Shown one piece after another: positions 5,127 to 10,148 of a stretch of 64,000 nucleotides of DNA; within the stretch, counting starts at the first letter, position 1, and the number at the start of each line of letters is the position of its first letter. The translations under genes were made by a program, and so were the position numbers. The DNA comes from Epithemia pelagica (lineage: Eukaryota > Protista > Bacillariophyta), in contig OX337231.1 of NCBI GenBank assembly GCA_946965045.2, positions 1,550,001-1,614,000 on the forward strand, read 5' to 3'. The notes beneath the pieces are model-generated. The model did no database searches. It saw nothing but the letters and a program-made list of their open reading frames with translations, and was not told where the DNA came from.

Positions 5127-7271
5127 ATGAACAACTTCAGACTTCTCCATCGTGGATTCTTATTTGCAGTATATGTGTTGCTTCGAAAGACCTGTTTGGC
5201 TGAAAAGATTGTCGTTGTCGGATCAGCCAATGTCGACACTTTCTTGACAGTGGAGCGCTTGCCAGTGGAAGGCGAGAATCTTGTCACCGTTGAAGAACCT
5301 ATTGTGGATGTCCCAGGCGGCAAAGGATGTACACAAGCTATTGCGGCTTGCAAGCTTCTTGATGATTCTAGAGGAGTTGTCTCATTTGTTGGTCAGTTTG
5401 GAAATGACTCAGCGACGAAACTTCTGCAAACGACTTTGCGAGAGGCTGGTGTCGACATTTCGGACTCGGGGATGGACCATGAACACCCCTGTGGACGAGG
5501 ATATGTCTTTCTGTCGAGGTCGACTGGACAAGTAAGCGCTATTGTTTCAGGAGGAAGCAACCAAAATGGATGGCGTGCATATGATTGTGCTTGGGCAAAG
5601 TATTCCAATCGACCCGAGAGTATTGTATTGAATGGAATGATTGATCGCCTGCTTCAAGATTGTTCATGTTTGATGCTTCAACGTGAGGTTCCAGAATGCG
5701 TGAACCAACTATTTGCCGCAAAAGCGAAGTCAAGACATATACTGGTACTCCAGGACGTTGGAGGAAGTGACCGCCCCATGGACAGGGCGCACATGGAAAA
5801 CTGTGATTTTCTCATTCCCAATGAGACTGAATTGCAGCGATTAGTCATATCCTGTGGCCTGGATGAATCTTCTTTACCTGAAAGCGTTGTTGAAAGAGCG
5901 AAAATTCTTCAAGCTCATGGTGCGCGGAATGTTCTTGTGACACAAGGGAGTAGAGGTTCCACGTTGGTGACAGAACACGGGGAAATGGTATATCATCAAC
6001 CGGCAACTCTGACTCAATCACCTGTTGTCGATGAGACTGGTGCCGGCGATTGTTATCGTGCTGCATTTGCTGTTGCGATGCTTGAGGGTAAGTCTCTTCA
6101 GGCATCGATGGAGTTCGCATCAGCTGCTGGTTCTTTGTCTGTAGAACGACACGGAGCTGTTCCCAGTTCCCCAGCACGCAGCGAGGTCGATCATCGCTGT
6201 CAAACAGATCATGTGCTCTCCATCCCGAGAGGCGATGGGTCTGGAAGCAGCCCTATCCTCAACAGCTGGTCTGTGAGAGGAGGAACGATATCCAAGGACG
6301 AATTTCCTTTCTTGATTGGTTCCCGCCTTAACTCGATGAAAGATAGACCTGAATTGTGGCCTAAGCCGTTGTCAACTCCTCGGGATTTTGTCCAGAGACA
6401 AGCCACCATTAATGGTCTAACATGTGTCGACTTCAACTACCCTCAGCACTTCCTTACATGGACCGGTAAGGAAGCGAAGGAAGCCCTTCAAGAAGCGGGT
6501 CTGCTGGCAGGAGCTGTCTGTCTCCGATACCCGGCAAAGTTTGCCCGTGGTGCAATGAATCACCCTGACAAAGCTCTCAGACGCGAGGCAATTGAATTGA
6601 CTAAAGAGGCTGCACGCGTAGCGATGGAGTTGGGTTGTAATGAAGTTGTAGTATGGAGTGCTTTTGATGGCTATGATTATCCATTCCAGGTTGACTATGA
6701 TTCAAAGTGGGATGAACTCATAGAAGCGTTCACGGAATGCTGCGATGAGTTTCCTGACATAAAGTTTTCTGTCGAATACAAGCCTACCGATGAGAATACC
6801 CGATTCTTCACAGTACCGAGCACAGGAGCCGCATTCTTACTGGTATCACAAGTCAATCGGAGCAACTTTGGCTTAACCCTAGATGTGGGGCATATGCTCA
6901 TGTCTGGAGAGAACCCCGGGCAGTCAATTGCCATGGCTGGTAGAGCAGGGAAACTTTTTGGTATCCAACTGAACGATGGATACACACGATTGGCAGCTGA
7001 AGATGGCTTGATGTTTGGATCAGTCCATCCTGGGATGGCTCTGGAGATAATGTACCAACTGCGAAAAATTCAATTTGACGGTCACATATACTTTGATACA
7101 TTTCCCCAGAGAAGCGACCCTGTCAAGGAAGCAGAATATAATATTGGGCGGGTGAAAGATTTATGGAGATTATCCGGGCGGATAACGCAAGATCGACTGA
7201 CCAGTATATGGCAGCAACACGACGCCATCGAGGCACTTAGATTGGTGGATGAATCTCTTCGCTCTTTGTAG
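5127..7271 (+). CDS. PfkB/ribokinase fused to a xylose-isomerase-fold sugar isomerase (D-apiose-isomerase-like), with an N-terminal signal-like peptide
   Basis: Kinase motifs VVVGSANVD, PGGKG.TQA, PNETE and DETGAGD; isomerase motifs RLNS, W...DGYDY.FQ.DY, EYKP, LDVGH, QLNDGY, DGLMFGSVH and YFDTFP. Confidence 0.9.
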   Translation: MNNFRLLHRGFLFAVYVLLRKTCLAEKIVVVGSANVDTFLTVERLPVEGENLVTVEEPIVDVPGGKGCTQAIAACKLLDDSRGVVSFVGQFGNDSATKLLQTTLREAGVDISDSGMDHEHPCGRGYVFLSRSTGQVSAIVSGGSNQNGWRAYDCAWAKYSNRPESIVLNGMIDRLLQDCSCLMLQREVPECVNQLFAAKAKSRHILVLQDVGGSDRPMDRAHMENCDFLIPNETELQRLVISCGLDESSLPESVVERAKILQAHGARNVLVTQGSRGSTLVTEHGEMVYHQPATLTQSPVVDETGAGDCYRAAFAVAMLEGKSLQASMEFASAAGSLSVERHGAVPSSPARSEVDHRCQTDHVLSIPRGDGSGSSPILNSWSVRGGTISKDEFPFLIGSRLNSMKDRPELWPKPLSTPRDFVQRQATINGLTCVDFNYPQHFLTWTGKEAKEALQEAGLLAGAVCLRYPAKFARGAMNHPDKALRREAIELTKEAARVAMELGCNEVVVWSAFDGYDYPFQVDYDSKWDELIEAFTECCDEFPDIKFSVEYKPTDENTRFFTVPSTGAAFLLVSQVNRSNFGLTLDVGHMLMSGENPGQSIAMAGRAGKLFGIQLNDGYTRLAAEDGLMFGSVHPGMALEIMYQLRKIQFDGHIYFDTFPQRSDPVKEAEYNIGRVKDLWRLSGRITQDRLTSIWQQHDAIEALRLVDESLRSL

Positions 7272-7435: not shown

Positions 7436-7574
7436 AGAATGAAGATTAAGTCGCAGCAAAGACCAAAGATGACGATAGATGATGATTACAACAGAATGGC
7501 GAAATCCCTGAACAGCAACAAGGCTCTTGTAGAATGTTGATTCCAGAAAGGAGGGGGACAGATTTTGGATGTTC
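7436..7574 (+). repeat. Direct repeat copy 1 (about 140 bp)
   Basis: Core 7436-7519 matches 10149-10229 at 73/81 aligned positions plus a 3-bp indel; similarity continues to GATTTTGGATGT. Confidence 0.9.
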
Positions 7575-7734
7575 ACATTATTTCACATACCCCATAGCTT
7601 CCGCATACGCCATTCTTTTCGACGAGGGACGCGCCGTGGGGAGAATTCACATCGAAATTTCCACCCCCGCTGGGGGGTACCCGGCACCACATGATGTGTC
7701 GGCGAAAATTCTAGCACACAAAAAGCAACCCAAA

Positions 7735-9696
7735 ATGACCTCCGCCAATTTGAAAATTGCGCTTGACCTGCTCGGGGAGACACCACTGAGTGATCTTCCT
7801 GACACCGAGACAAATCCCCTTTGGAACGACATAAAGGAAGAGCTCGGTTTGTCGACATTGCAGCTCTCGGCGCTCAAAAACCACAAGCTGGAAACAGTAC
7901 GGCATGAGGACAAACGCCAGAAGACTCTCGCTGATGAACTCCGAGCACTCACTCTTTCTCGTCCACGCAAGCCCAGAGTGCGGGACCATTTGGTTGCTCG
8001 GGAAGAGGCCAAACAAAGGATCATGACATACCTTCAACAGGTACGCGACAGCCACCGGGAAGTGTTGGACAACTCCGGTAAATTCACACTTCTTGGGACT
8101 TCAGGTGTCAAAGGCATTGGCAAGACAGAAATCTTGGGCCAGATCTGTGATTCTTGGGCCGCTGAAGCGCTTGGAGACGGGACGAAGGCTCTTTATGTAA
8201 CTTACAACGGATCGGGCTATTCGGGCGACTACTGTGTGAATCCAGCTAGGATTGGTGGTAACTATGGGAATGCGTTTGGGCACCTTCTCCTAGTCTCTTG
8301 CGGGGTTCCTGAAAAAACGGCCGTGAGAGTGCCGCTTGAAGAAGCTATTGTCTATGTCATGGACAAATTTCGCGGCGAGTGTCAATCTGAATTAGTCCTG
8401 GTGATATGCGTAGATGAAATCGTGGAATTGAATCGAGGAATCACGTCCAAGCCCAATGAGTGGAACCCGGCTGCACATACGATGTCTCAATTGATGAAAC
8501 TACAAGACAGGATGGATGGGAAGCTGATCTTTGTTTTTACAGGAATCCTTGATTCCATGTTTACTGCTTTGAAGTCGCTTTCCGGAAGAGCAGTGGCCCC
8601 GCTGCCATTGACATTAATTCCATTGCGAGCCGTTTTCTCCGATCTCCTTCCACGAAGACTGCTCCCTTTCGTGGAACAACCAGCCGTGAATCAACTCATT
8701 CTTTCTTGCGCTGGCCACCCGCGAGCAACTGTGGACGGCCTGGATAGGGCAACGCAAACTTGGCAGCTGCAAGAAGGTATGAACAATTCAGAGATTTCGA
8801 CAGCGGAAATTCTGGATGCCCGGTCAACAATCGTGAATGTGACGTGCAAGTTTGACGTCGCATACATTTCCCATGACATCCTGAGCGAGTGGTTTGACTT
8901 TCGTCAGTCGATATCAGAAGAAAGGAGAGAAGACTTGTTGGCGAAAGGAATTCTGCACACGGTCATGAACGGCGACGAAAGGGTGGAGTTTCTCTTTCCT
9001 CTCCTCCTTCAAGATTGGGCAAGACAACATCAAAGCACACCGTTTGGCTTTCACTTGCACGGACTATATAACGCCGATCTTGTCCTTGCCGCAGACAATG
9101 AAAAGAATATGGAGGCGGTGATGTACCACTATGAGGCCTTGCTTCGGAGAGCAACTGAAGGAGGAACGTTTCCGCTTGGGAGCTTCTATGCTAGTCGCCA
9201 TGTGGCTCCATCACTTAAATTCAAGATGCTGAAGAGCATCATTGTACCCGGCAGTTTCAACAGCGTGGGCTATGTCGAGGATTTTGCCGATATCAAAGAA
9301 ACGATTCGGCATCTCAGAAATGGATGGATATTAGTCTCGAAGAAGCACAGCGAAATCGGCATCGAATATCTTGTTCCGTACGTGTGCGACGATGAATTGA
9401 TTGTCGCATGCGTCCAGTGCAAATTTGTCCAGAAATCTACAAACTGGGCAAAGATCAAAGACAAGATGTTGACAGCGATCAAAGGCTTGCGGGAGAATCA
9501 CGTGAAATTCTTTCCTGTCGTGTACACGACGGCCGACCAGAGAACGATGATGGAATCTACGTTTGGCGATGGGGTATACTTTGTGGAATGCGATCTTTAT
9601 GATTTTACGAAGCGACTGGGGATCCTTCGTATGCATACCTTGAAGTTGGGGGCAAATTTGCTTACTTCTCATCCATTTTTGCGCATTACCGAGTAG
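7735..9696 (+). CDS. Crinkler-like protein: short helical header, P-loop NTPase and PD-(D/E)xK-like nuclease domain
   Basis: Walker A GVKGIGKT, Walker B LVICVDE, C-terminal GIEYL...CVQCKF (E..QxK); ATG in CAAAATG context at 7735. Confidence 0.7.
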   Translation: MTSANLKIALDLLGETPLSDLPDTETNPLWNDIKEELGLSTLQLSALKNHKLETVRHEDKRQKTLADELRALTLSRPRKPRVRDHLVAREEAKQRIMTYLQQVRDSHREVLDNSGKFTLLGTSGVKGIGKTEILGQICDSWAAEALGDGTKALYVTYNGSGYSGDYCVNPARIGGNYGNAFGHLLLVSCGVPEKTAVRVPLEEAIVYVMDKFRGECQSELVLVICVDEIVELNRGITSKPNEWNPAAHTMSQLMKLQDRMDGKLIFVFTGILDSMFTALKSLSGRAVAPLPLTLIPLRAVFSDLLPRRLLPFVEQPAVNQLILSCAGHPRATVDGLDRATQTWQLQEGMNNSEISTAEILDARSTIVNVTCKFDVAYISHDILSEWFDFRQSISEERREDLLAKGILHTVMNGDERVEFLFPLLLQDWARQHQSTPFGFHLHGLYNADLVLAADNEKNMEAVMYHYEALLRRATEGGTFPLGSFYASRHVAPSLKFKMLKSIIVPGSFNSVGYVEDFADIKETIRHLRNGWILVSKKHSEIGIEYLVPYVCDDELIVACVQCKFVQKSTNWAKIKDKMLTAIKGLRENHVKFFPVVYTTADQRTMMESTFGDGVYFVECDLYDFTKRLGILRMHTLKLGANLLTSHPFLRITE

Positions 9697-10148
9697 ATCG
9701 TTTCTTTATAGCGAGAGCTAATAACTGCTGGGATCGGATTCTTGGGCAAGCTACCCGTAAGGGAGACCAAAGGATGCAATTATGTTCACCCAAATACGTA
9801 CTAGCGCTAAGGTACGGCAACAATCAAATAAGACCGGTAACGAAGAATGCACCCACCTTGACTCAAAATCGTGACTCGAATCCGAAATCGGATTTCGAGA
9901 AAATCGTTCCGAAAAATTTCCGCTCCAAAACGATACCAAACAAAACGCGACGACAACCATGCCGACAATCGATTGGCTAAAGGCTGTTTATGTTGTGCTT
10001 GATCATGGGCGCGTATAATCTCGTTTCTATTCGAAATACAGTTGATGTCGACTGACTTCTATAATATTCGGTTAGATCGCTTGACTAAGTTTTTATTCAG
10101 TTAATATCATTATTACTGAATAAAGATGGGAAGATGATTCGCACACAA

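Follow-up and report, generated by a model that had tools for sequence, protein, structure and literature searches.

The 64,000-nucleotide stretch of the genome of the diatom Epithemia pelagica analyzed here (contig OX337231.1 of assembly GCA_946965045.2, positions 1,550,001 to 1,614,000, forward strand; hereafter the window) carries, at positions 5127-7271 of its plus strand, a gene for a ribokinase fused to a xylose isomerase-like domain. The gene is a single open reading frame (ORF) of 714 codons that starts at the first ATG (5127) and contains no internal stop or frame change, and its gene model requires no intron. Four parts are present in the one protein: a signal-like peptide, a PfkB ribokinase, a disordered linker containing RGG, and a xylose isomerase-like TIM barrel ( Table 1 ). 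This architecture, together with a set of motifs, had been proposed in an earlier reading of the DNA letters (hereafter the sequence-only reading) and is confirmed by the ORF, the Pfam matches and the structural model. All the motifs quoted at that time occur in the translation, both those of the isomerase (RLNS, residues 400-403; DFNYPQH, 435-441; DGYDYPFQVDY, 514-524; EYKP, 550-553; LNDGY, 615-619; EDGLMFGSVH, 625-634; YFDTFP, 655-660) and those of the linker (IPRGDG, 366-371; VRGG, 383-386).

The AlphaFold model, based on 63 fusion proteins, shows a mean predicted local distance difference test score (pLDDT) of 91.2 and consists of an N-terminal helix (residues 2-22), two well-folded domains, namely the kinase (26-364) and the TIM barrel (396-712), and a disordered segment between them (369-389, pLDDT <50). 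Structural matches obtained with Foldseek are concordant with the sequence matches for both domains. A public collection already contains an identical 714-residue protein; among named relatives, the best match is a hypothetical protein from Epithemia clementina (78% identity).

Table 1. Parts of the ribokinase-isomerase ORF, in coordinates of the 64,000-nucleotide window.
Part	Residues	Window positions	Strand	Evidence
Presequence, signal peptide-like	1-25	5127..5201	+	Translation; predicted helix 2-22; hydrophobic core FLFAVYVLL
PfkB ribokinase domain, plant/algal type	26-364	5202..6218	+	PF00294; 6ILR; Foldseek; motifs kept
Disordered interdomain linker	365-395	6219..6311	+	Low pLDDT; IPRGDG at 6222-6239, VRGG at 6273-6284
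Metal-dependent aldose-ketose isomerase-like TIM barrel, 3KTC family	396-714	6312..7268	+	PF01261; 3KTC; Foldseek
Stop codon		7269..7271	+	ORF list

Homology searches recovered over 100 full-length fusions (685-830 residues) from diatoms, among them Seminavis, Nitzschia, Fragilariopsis, Pseudo-nitzschia, Cylindrotheca, Mayamaea and Amphora, in addition to partial copies in the centric diatoms Thalassiosira oceanica and Conticribra. The fusion is present in the bolidophyte Triparma as well. Cluster look-ups added the haptophyte Pavlovales sp. CCMP2436, where the protein is labelled "ribokinase/xylose isomerase", and the green algae Chloropicon primus ("ribokinase xylose isomerase") and Nannochloris/Chlorella desiccata. 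The database names of these orthologues are automatic, and some of them read simply 'xylose isomerase'. In other diatoms, and also in a relative of the Pavlovales haptophyte, the entire fusion is covered by MMETSP transcripts marked 'type:complete', indicating that the fusion is expressed as one transcript in these relatives. As judged from this distribution, the fusion is old and shared by marine algae of several phyla, and full-text literature searches returned no study of a ribokinase-isomerase fusion. Two fusion relatives, P0356 (1139 aa) and P0431 (953 aa), carry about 400 additional residues N-terminal to the kinase, which starts at around residue 420-427.

The kinase domain matches the Pfam PfkB family (PF00294) over residues 26-350 (nt 5202-6176) with an E value of 1.5e-44 and 153 bits, against a gathering cutoff of 25.8. 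Its top match in the PDB is the Arabidopsis ribokinase 6ILR (E 2.5e-47), bacterial ribokinases following at about 1e-25, and the Foldseek TM scores are 0.85-0.89 to 6ILR and 0.89-0.90 to 1RKD/1RK2. On the ribokinase equivalog TIGR02152, which is a bacterial model, it scores 172 bits, below the cutoff of 299.65. The ribokinase motifs GSxNxD, GGKG, QxE, PNxxE (PNExE in this protein) and GAGD are invariant or nearly so among the 63 fusions. Among standalone proteins, those closest to it are ribokinases of dinoflagellates and of the green alga Haematococcus, with 40-49% identity, and the fused kinase domains of different phyla are no more similar to each other than they are to standalone algal ribokinases. 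Since the top match is the Arabidopsis enzyme and the nearest standalone proteins are algal, the kinase is judged to be a eukaryotic ribokinase of plant/algal type rather than one acquired from bacteria.

With 6ILR and the standalone algal ribokinases the diatom kinase shares the substrate-binding and catalytic motifs as well as its top sequence and fold match. It differs from them in being fused to an isomerase, in having a signal peptide-like presequence in place of the plastid transit peptide and, in the diatom members, in a Thr for the Asn of GGKGxNQA. This replacement is found in 42 of the 63 fusions, all of them from diatoms, while the other algal fusions keep Asn; a possible consequence of the exchange of this sugar-contacting residue is a diatom-specific shift in kinase specificity. 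The two residues concerned (68-69, nt 5328-5333) make the diatom motif GGKGCTQA, versus GGKGANQA in other algal fusions and in standalone ribokinases. Arg311 was also considered as a fusion-specific kinase residue and rejected, given that standalone dinoflagellate ribokinases carry it as well.

The C-terminal domain belongs to the xylose isomerase-like TIM barrels of Pfam AP_endonuc_2 (PF01261; residues 448-670, E 3e-21, 76.7 bits against a cutoff of 31.1). Its closest solved relative is PDB entry 3KTC (E 1.1e-45, with homology over residues ∼420-713 and a Foldseek TM score of 0.87), with class I xylose isomerases (E about 1e-16) and then rhamnose isomerases next in the PDB search. The family around 3KTC is small (195 clusters at 50% identity, E up to 1e-30), and the ESM Atlas yielded only generic 'TIM barrel protein' clusters. 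Residues D514, E550, K552, D586, H589, E595, D617, E640 and D657 (numbered in the window's protein) are invariant across the family and include the counterparts of the catalytic Lys and of the metal ligands of xylose isomerase. With the class I XylA enzymes of Streptomyces, Actinoplanes and Arthrobacter the diatom domain has in common the TIM-barrel fold, counterparts of Glu181, Lys183, His220 and Asp287 and, in the alignment, acidic counterparts of Glu217 and Asp255/257. However, these enzymes match only distantly and are longer than the diatom domain, and Asp245 lacks a conserved counterpart, the position being Asp in 3KTC and Gln in diatoms.

Scores on the canonical XylA models are far below cutoff, both for class I (TIGR02631, 73.4 versus 447 bits) and for class II (TIGR02630, 25.6 versus 533), in agreement with the claim of the sequence-only reading that the domain is not a eukaryotic class II XylA. 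The same scores make it hardly credible that the locus encodes a canonical D-xylose isomerase attached to a kinase, despite the 'xylose isomerase' labels of some orthologues. An artefact of the gene model, in which two neighbours had been merged, has equally little to recommend it, given the uninterrupted frame between the domains, the full-length transcripts of orthologues and the conservation of the fusion across phyla.

In the isomerase trees the algal fusions form one clade, with Shimodaira-Hasegawa-like approximate likelihood ratio test (SH-aLRT) supports of 98 in a 90-row tree and 99 in a 36-row tree. Sequences similar to 3KTC make up a separate clade of 30 rows (SH-aLRT 97 in the 90-row tree), and the deep division of the isomerase tree into its two halves has weak support (57). 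The position of 3KTC, which is absent from the tree, was estimated via bit scores: these reach 217, 208 and 203 for members of the 30-row clade (P0453, P0421 and P0440, respectively), yet only 152-162 for the diatom domain, P0385 and P0400. The assignment of the domain to a branch of D-apiose isomerase (ApsI) type, made in the sequence-only reading, thus stands at the level of the small family, whereas orthology to ApsI is not supported by these comparisons. The domain and 3KTC have the family and its invariant metal and catalytic residues in common; 3KTC differs in being a standalone protein and in its greater similarity to the other clade, whose loci contain FGGY kinases and thiamine pyrophosphate (TPP)-dependent enzymes and not PfkB kinases.

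Four bacterial standalone isomerases (P0213, P0215, P0229 and P0233) fall inside the algal clade, beside the haptophyte, with SH-aLRT values of 91-96. In an approximately unbiased (AU) test on 36 rows, a tree that keeps the eukaryotes together is not clearly rejected (p = 0.055), and the nesting of the bacterial clade within the algal one is therefore not established. Transfer of the isomerase gene from algae to marine bacteria is a possible reading of these trees. The bacterial origin that had been suggested for the whole module may apply to the isomerase, deep in the tree, but does not extend to the kinase.

The bacterial proteins nearest to the diatom isomerase are standalone proteins of about 320 residues with 50-52% identity, from metagenome-assembled genomes (MAGs) of Deltaproteobacteria and from marine metagenomes. 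In all four of the nearest bacterial lineages with readable flanks, namely the P0215 group (loci L001, L005, L007, L008 and L012), P0385 (L016), P0393 (L100) and P0405 (L102), a PfkB gene comes directly after the isomerase gene and overlaps or abuts it. The best model for these partner kinases is the ribokinase TIGR02152, on which they score 133-243 bits, below its cutoff of 299.65. Pairs of this kind, as in MAG JAYPUA010000043 (L001/L006), resemble the algal fusion in the close similarity of the isomerase and in the ribokinase-like PfkB immediately next to it. They differ in that the two proteins are encoded by separate genes, in the order isomerase then kinase, and in that they sit in ribose-type uptake clusters. 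In L001, L005 and L012, for instance, the pair is followed by RbsD, a bona fide ribokinase (RbsK) and an ATP-binding cassette (ABC) transporter, and L100 also encodes a binding protein of ribose/allose type.

Between the algal kinase domain and the bacterial partner kinases there is no specific relationship (26-30% identity), and the isomerase subfamily has therefore become linked to ribokinase-like kinases more than once. Conservation of the pair, the most informative of the lines of evidence, in turn supports, at the level of gene content, a coupled action of isomerase and kinase on one ribose-like sugar.

The kinase and the isomerase could instead have unrelated jobs, the former salvaging ribose released from nucleosides and the latter acting on another sugar, with the fusion serving co-expression or co-location. 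The kinase does look like an ordinary plant/algal ribokinase with all its motifs, and has no special relationship to the bacterial partners; moreover, ribose released by nucleotide breakdown in plants is phosphorylated in plastids (PMC12589546). This explanation is nevertheless improbable in view of the independent adjacency of isomerase and kinase in four bacterial lineages and of the stability of the fusion across algal phyla.

In L001 (L001:7339-9859, MAG JAYPUA010000043) the operon is composed of a class II aldolase similar to fuculose-phosphate aldolase, the isomerase and the PfkB kinase, and is divergent from a cluster with MtnK-like (APH), MtnA-like (IF-2B), FGGY, BtpA and Dak1/Dak2 genes. 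The isomerase-kinase pair of this operon lies at 8001-8966 and 8963-9859. An isomerase/kinase/aldolase route adjoining a salvage cluster of deoxyribose or methylthioribose type is possible at this locus.

In 80 metagenomic loci on the 3KTC-like side, a PfkB gene was found nearby in only one, a TPP gene of E1/transketolase type in 27 and an FGGY kinase in 17. A clean split between PfkB and FGGY/TPP contexts was nevertheless rejected, since L007 and L008 have both: the order in L007:5138-12840 and in L008 is FGGY kinase, isomerase, PfkB, E1 alpha, E1 beta, an AcoC-like gene (lipoyl/E3-binding/alpha-beta-hydrolase) and a cyclase, followed by RbsD and RbsK, in MAGs assigned to Deltaproteobacteria or to an uncultured bacterium. 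The E1 alpha/beta set of these two loci, with or without the cyclase, is also the one seen beside 3KTC-like isomerases in 27 of the 80 metagenomic loci. Its sharing suggests a sugar pathway, as yet undescribed, whose final step would be a TPP-dependent cleavage similar to that of acetoin dehydrogenase.

Entry 3KTC is the Pectobacterium atrosepticum SCRI1043 protein YP_050048.1, annotated as a "putative sugar isomerase"; on circumstantial grounds it is likely to be ApsI. To our knowledge, apiose isomerase is the single characterised member of the small 3KTC family. Accession Q6D5T8 presumably belongs to the SCRI1043 series as well. This accession is named in a preprint as the characterised apulose kinase, and Pectobacterium clusters are reported to include apsI (PMC13001218). 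In the described apiose cluster the kinase is of the FGGY type and the transketolase is split (PMC13001218), and the annotation of the Escherichia coli apiose cluster likewise lists an FGGY kinase and a transketolase, along with a binding protein of ribose-binding type. Both sources bear out the earlier statement that bacteria pair ApsI with an FGGY kinase. In the algal fusion, instead of the FGGY apulose kinase AplK and the split transketolase AptA/AptB, the partner is a PfkB ribokinase.

These data bear on the proposal that the diatom isomerase is an ApsI orthologue converting apiose to apulose, with the PfkB kinase taking over the phosphorylation from the FGGY apulose kinase. Catalytic residues identical throughout the family and a closest solved structure that is probably ApsI are compatible with it, and so is the setting of L007 and L008 beside an FGGY kinase and a TPP-dependent enzyme, which echoes the isomerase/kinase/transketolase logic of the apiose pathway (PMC13001218). 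Also, since the binding protein of the E. coli apiose cluster is of ribose type, the ribose/allose-like binding protein of L100 is compatible with apiose. The diatom domain nonetheless lies outside the clade most similar to 3KTC, its kinase partner is a PfkB and not an FGGY kinase, no transketolase partner can be attributed to the algal fusion and literature searches found no report of apiose in diatoms, to which the circumstantial identity of 3KTC itself must be added. The apiose reading is for these reasons considered possible but rather unlikely.

Taken together, the observations are best accommodated by one bifunctional enzyme bearing a signal peptide and carrying out consecutive steps on one ribose-like sugar, a reading to which a probability of roughly 60% is assigned from the sequence, the model and the gene context. 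Its parts, from the N-terminus, are a signal peptide that is probably cleaved, a ribokinase of plant/algal type with intact catalytic motifs, a flexible linker rich in RGG and, from the 3KTC/ApsI-like branch, a two-metal aldose-ketose isomerase. The isomerase would convert the aldose form of one small ribose-like sugar to the ketose, which the kinase would then trap with ATP. That the two domains may act in sequence is suggested by the repeated association of the isomerase subfamily with ribokinase-like kinases. Candidate substrates are D-ribose or another ribo-configured sugar, and D-apiose; a ribo-configured sugar such as ribose, allose/psicose or similar is somewhat more likely than apiose.

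The two steps could also run in the reverse order. This is less likely, as free sugars are the substrates of the closest characterised relatives and the isomerase gene precedes the kinase gene in bacteria. In its stricter form, this alternative holds that ribose is first phosphorylated to ribose 5-phosphate and that the TIM barrel then isomerises the sugar phosphate, in the manner of a ribose-5-phosphate isomerase. The domain order, kinase then isomerase, and the intact ribokinase motifs agree with such a scheme, and some PF01261 members do use phosphosugars. Class I xylose isomerase, rhamnose isomerase and probably ApsI, however, act on free sugars, and a residue comparison gave no reliable phosphate-binding signature or arginines specific to the clade, making it very improbable that the kinase acts first in this way.

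The N-terminus, MNNFRLLHRGFLFAVYVLLRKTCLAEK, has a positively charged start (R5, H8, R9) and a 9-residue hydrophobic core, FLFAVYVLL (Kyte-Doolittle mean 2.88), and carries C-L-A, with small residues at -3 and -1, before E25 and immediately N-terminal to the first kinase strand. It thereby shows, on heuristic inspection, the charged n-region, the h-region of 7-15 residues and the small -3/-1 residues of a signal peptide. A hydrophobic core (Kyte-Doolittle mean ≥2.0) is present in 50 of the 53 full-length fusions, where the presequence has a median length of 30 residues and the core is separated from the first kinase strand by a median of 11. Typical -3/-1 sites are VLS|N, AHS|N, VQS|N, VYA|T and LLA|K, located 0-3 residues before the kinase domain. 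Most standalone algal ribokinases do not have such a core, and the Haematococcus protein starts with an Arg/Ser/Ala-rich, transit peptide-like segment.

Plastid import in diatoms relies on a motif of ASAFAP type, in which F, W, Y or L occupies position +1 after signal peptide cleavage and is followed by a transit peptide-like stretch. No such bipartite presequence is found in the fusion: residue +1 is E in this protein and N, K, T or I in most orthologues, and there is no room for a transit peptide. Exceptions are Nitzschia P0079 and Fragilariopsis P0099, with longer and possibly plastid-type presequences. No K/HDEL-like C-terminus is visible. The sequence-only reading had left the location among the endoplasmic reticulum (ER), the periplastid space and the plastid. 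A secretory-type signal is retained from that claim, whereas the plastid and periplastid options are not favoured. Because the signal-like core is conserved and the plastid-type motif is absent, the mature protein is predicted to work inside the secretory lumen and not in the plastid. In its most specific form, an algal isomerase-ribokinase located in the lumen (ER/Golgi or beyond) would phosphorylate a free ribose-like or apiose-like sugar with lumenal ATP, which is put forward as a tentative and rather doubtful extension; we know of no PfkB sugar kinase that has been placed in the secretory lumen. The linker, which the sequence-only reading had suggested as a possible processing site, carries the motif PRG(D)G and, just N-terminal to the isomerase domain, a second RGG. 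Most orthologues from diatoms have both motifs, the haptophyte and two unnamed fusions have weaker versions, and the green-algal fusions lack them.

Several points weigh against this interpretation. Two of the bacterial loci that carry the isomerase-PfkB pair, L007 and L008, have an FGGY kinase and an acetoin dehydrogenase-like TPP set beside it, which makes the contrast with ApsI-type surroundings less sharp, and the coupling of the two activities rests on convergent association and not on common descent of the pair. The signal peptide call combines hydrophobicity with visual inspection and is heuristic, and an ATP-dependent sugar kinase in the secretory lumen would be unusual. Furthermore, the functional case is drawn from sequence, model and gene context for the fusion clade and its bacterial relatives, and the evidence for a single transcript comes from transcriptomes of orthologues only.

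Downstream of the fusion gene, the neighbouring ORF (window positions 7534-9696, plus strand; 720 residues) contains a Walker-A-like stretch, GVKGIGKTE, and has no Pfam match.

Both folds are well known and orthologues are already in databases, so that the gene itself is not a discovery. What stands out is that the isomerase subfamily is tied to ribokinase-like kinases independently, as neighbouring genes in bacteria and by fusion in algae, a repeated association that constitutes a strong guilt-by-association argument for an undescribed two-step sugar pathway. Also, nearly every algal copy has a secretion-type signal, which is an unexpected address for an ATP-dependent sugar kinase and, if the lumenal reading is true, would point to an unknown lumenal route for sugar salvage or for the supply of glycan precursors. 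Knowing the sugar would allow hundreds of genes in algae and bacteria to be annotated, and might show how an unusual sugar is recycled or built by abundant phytoplankton.

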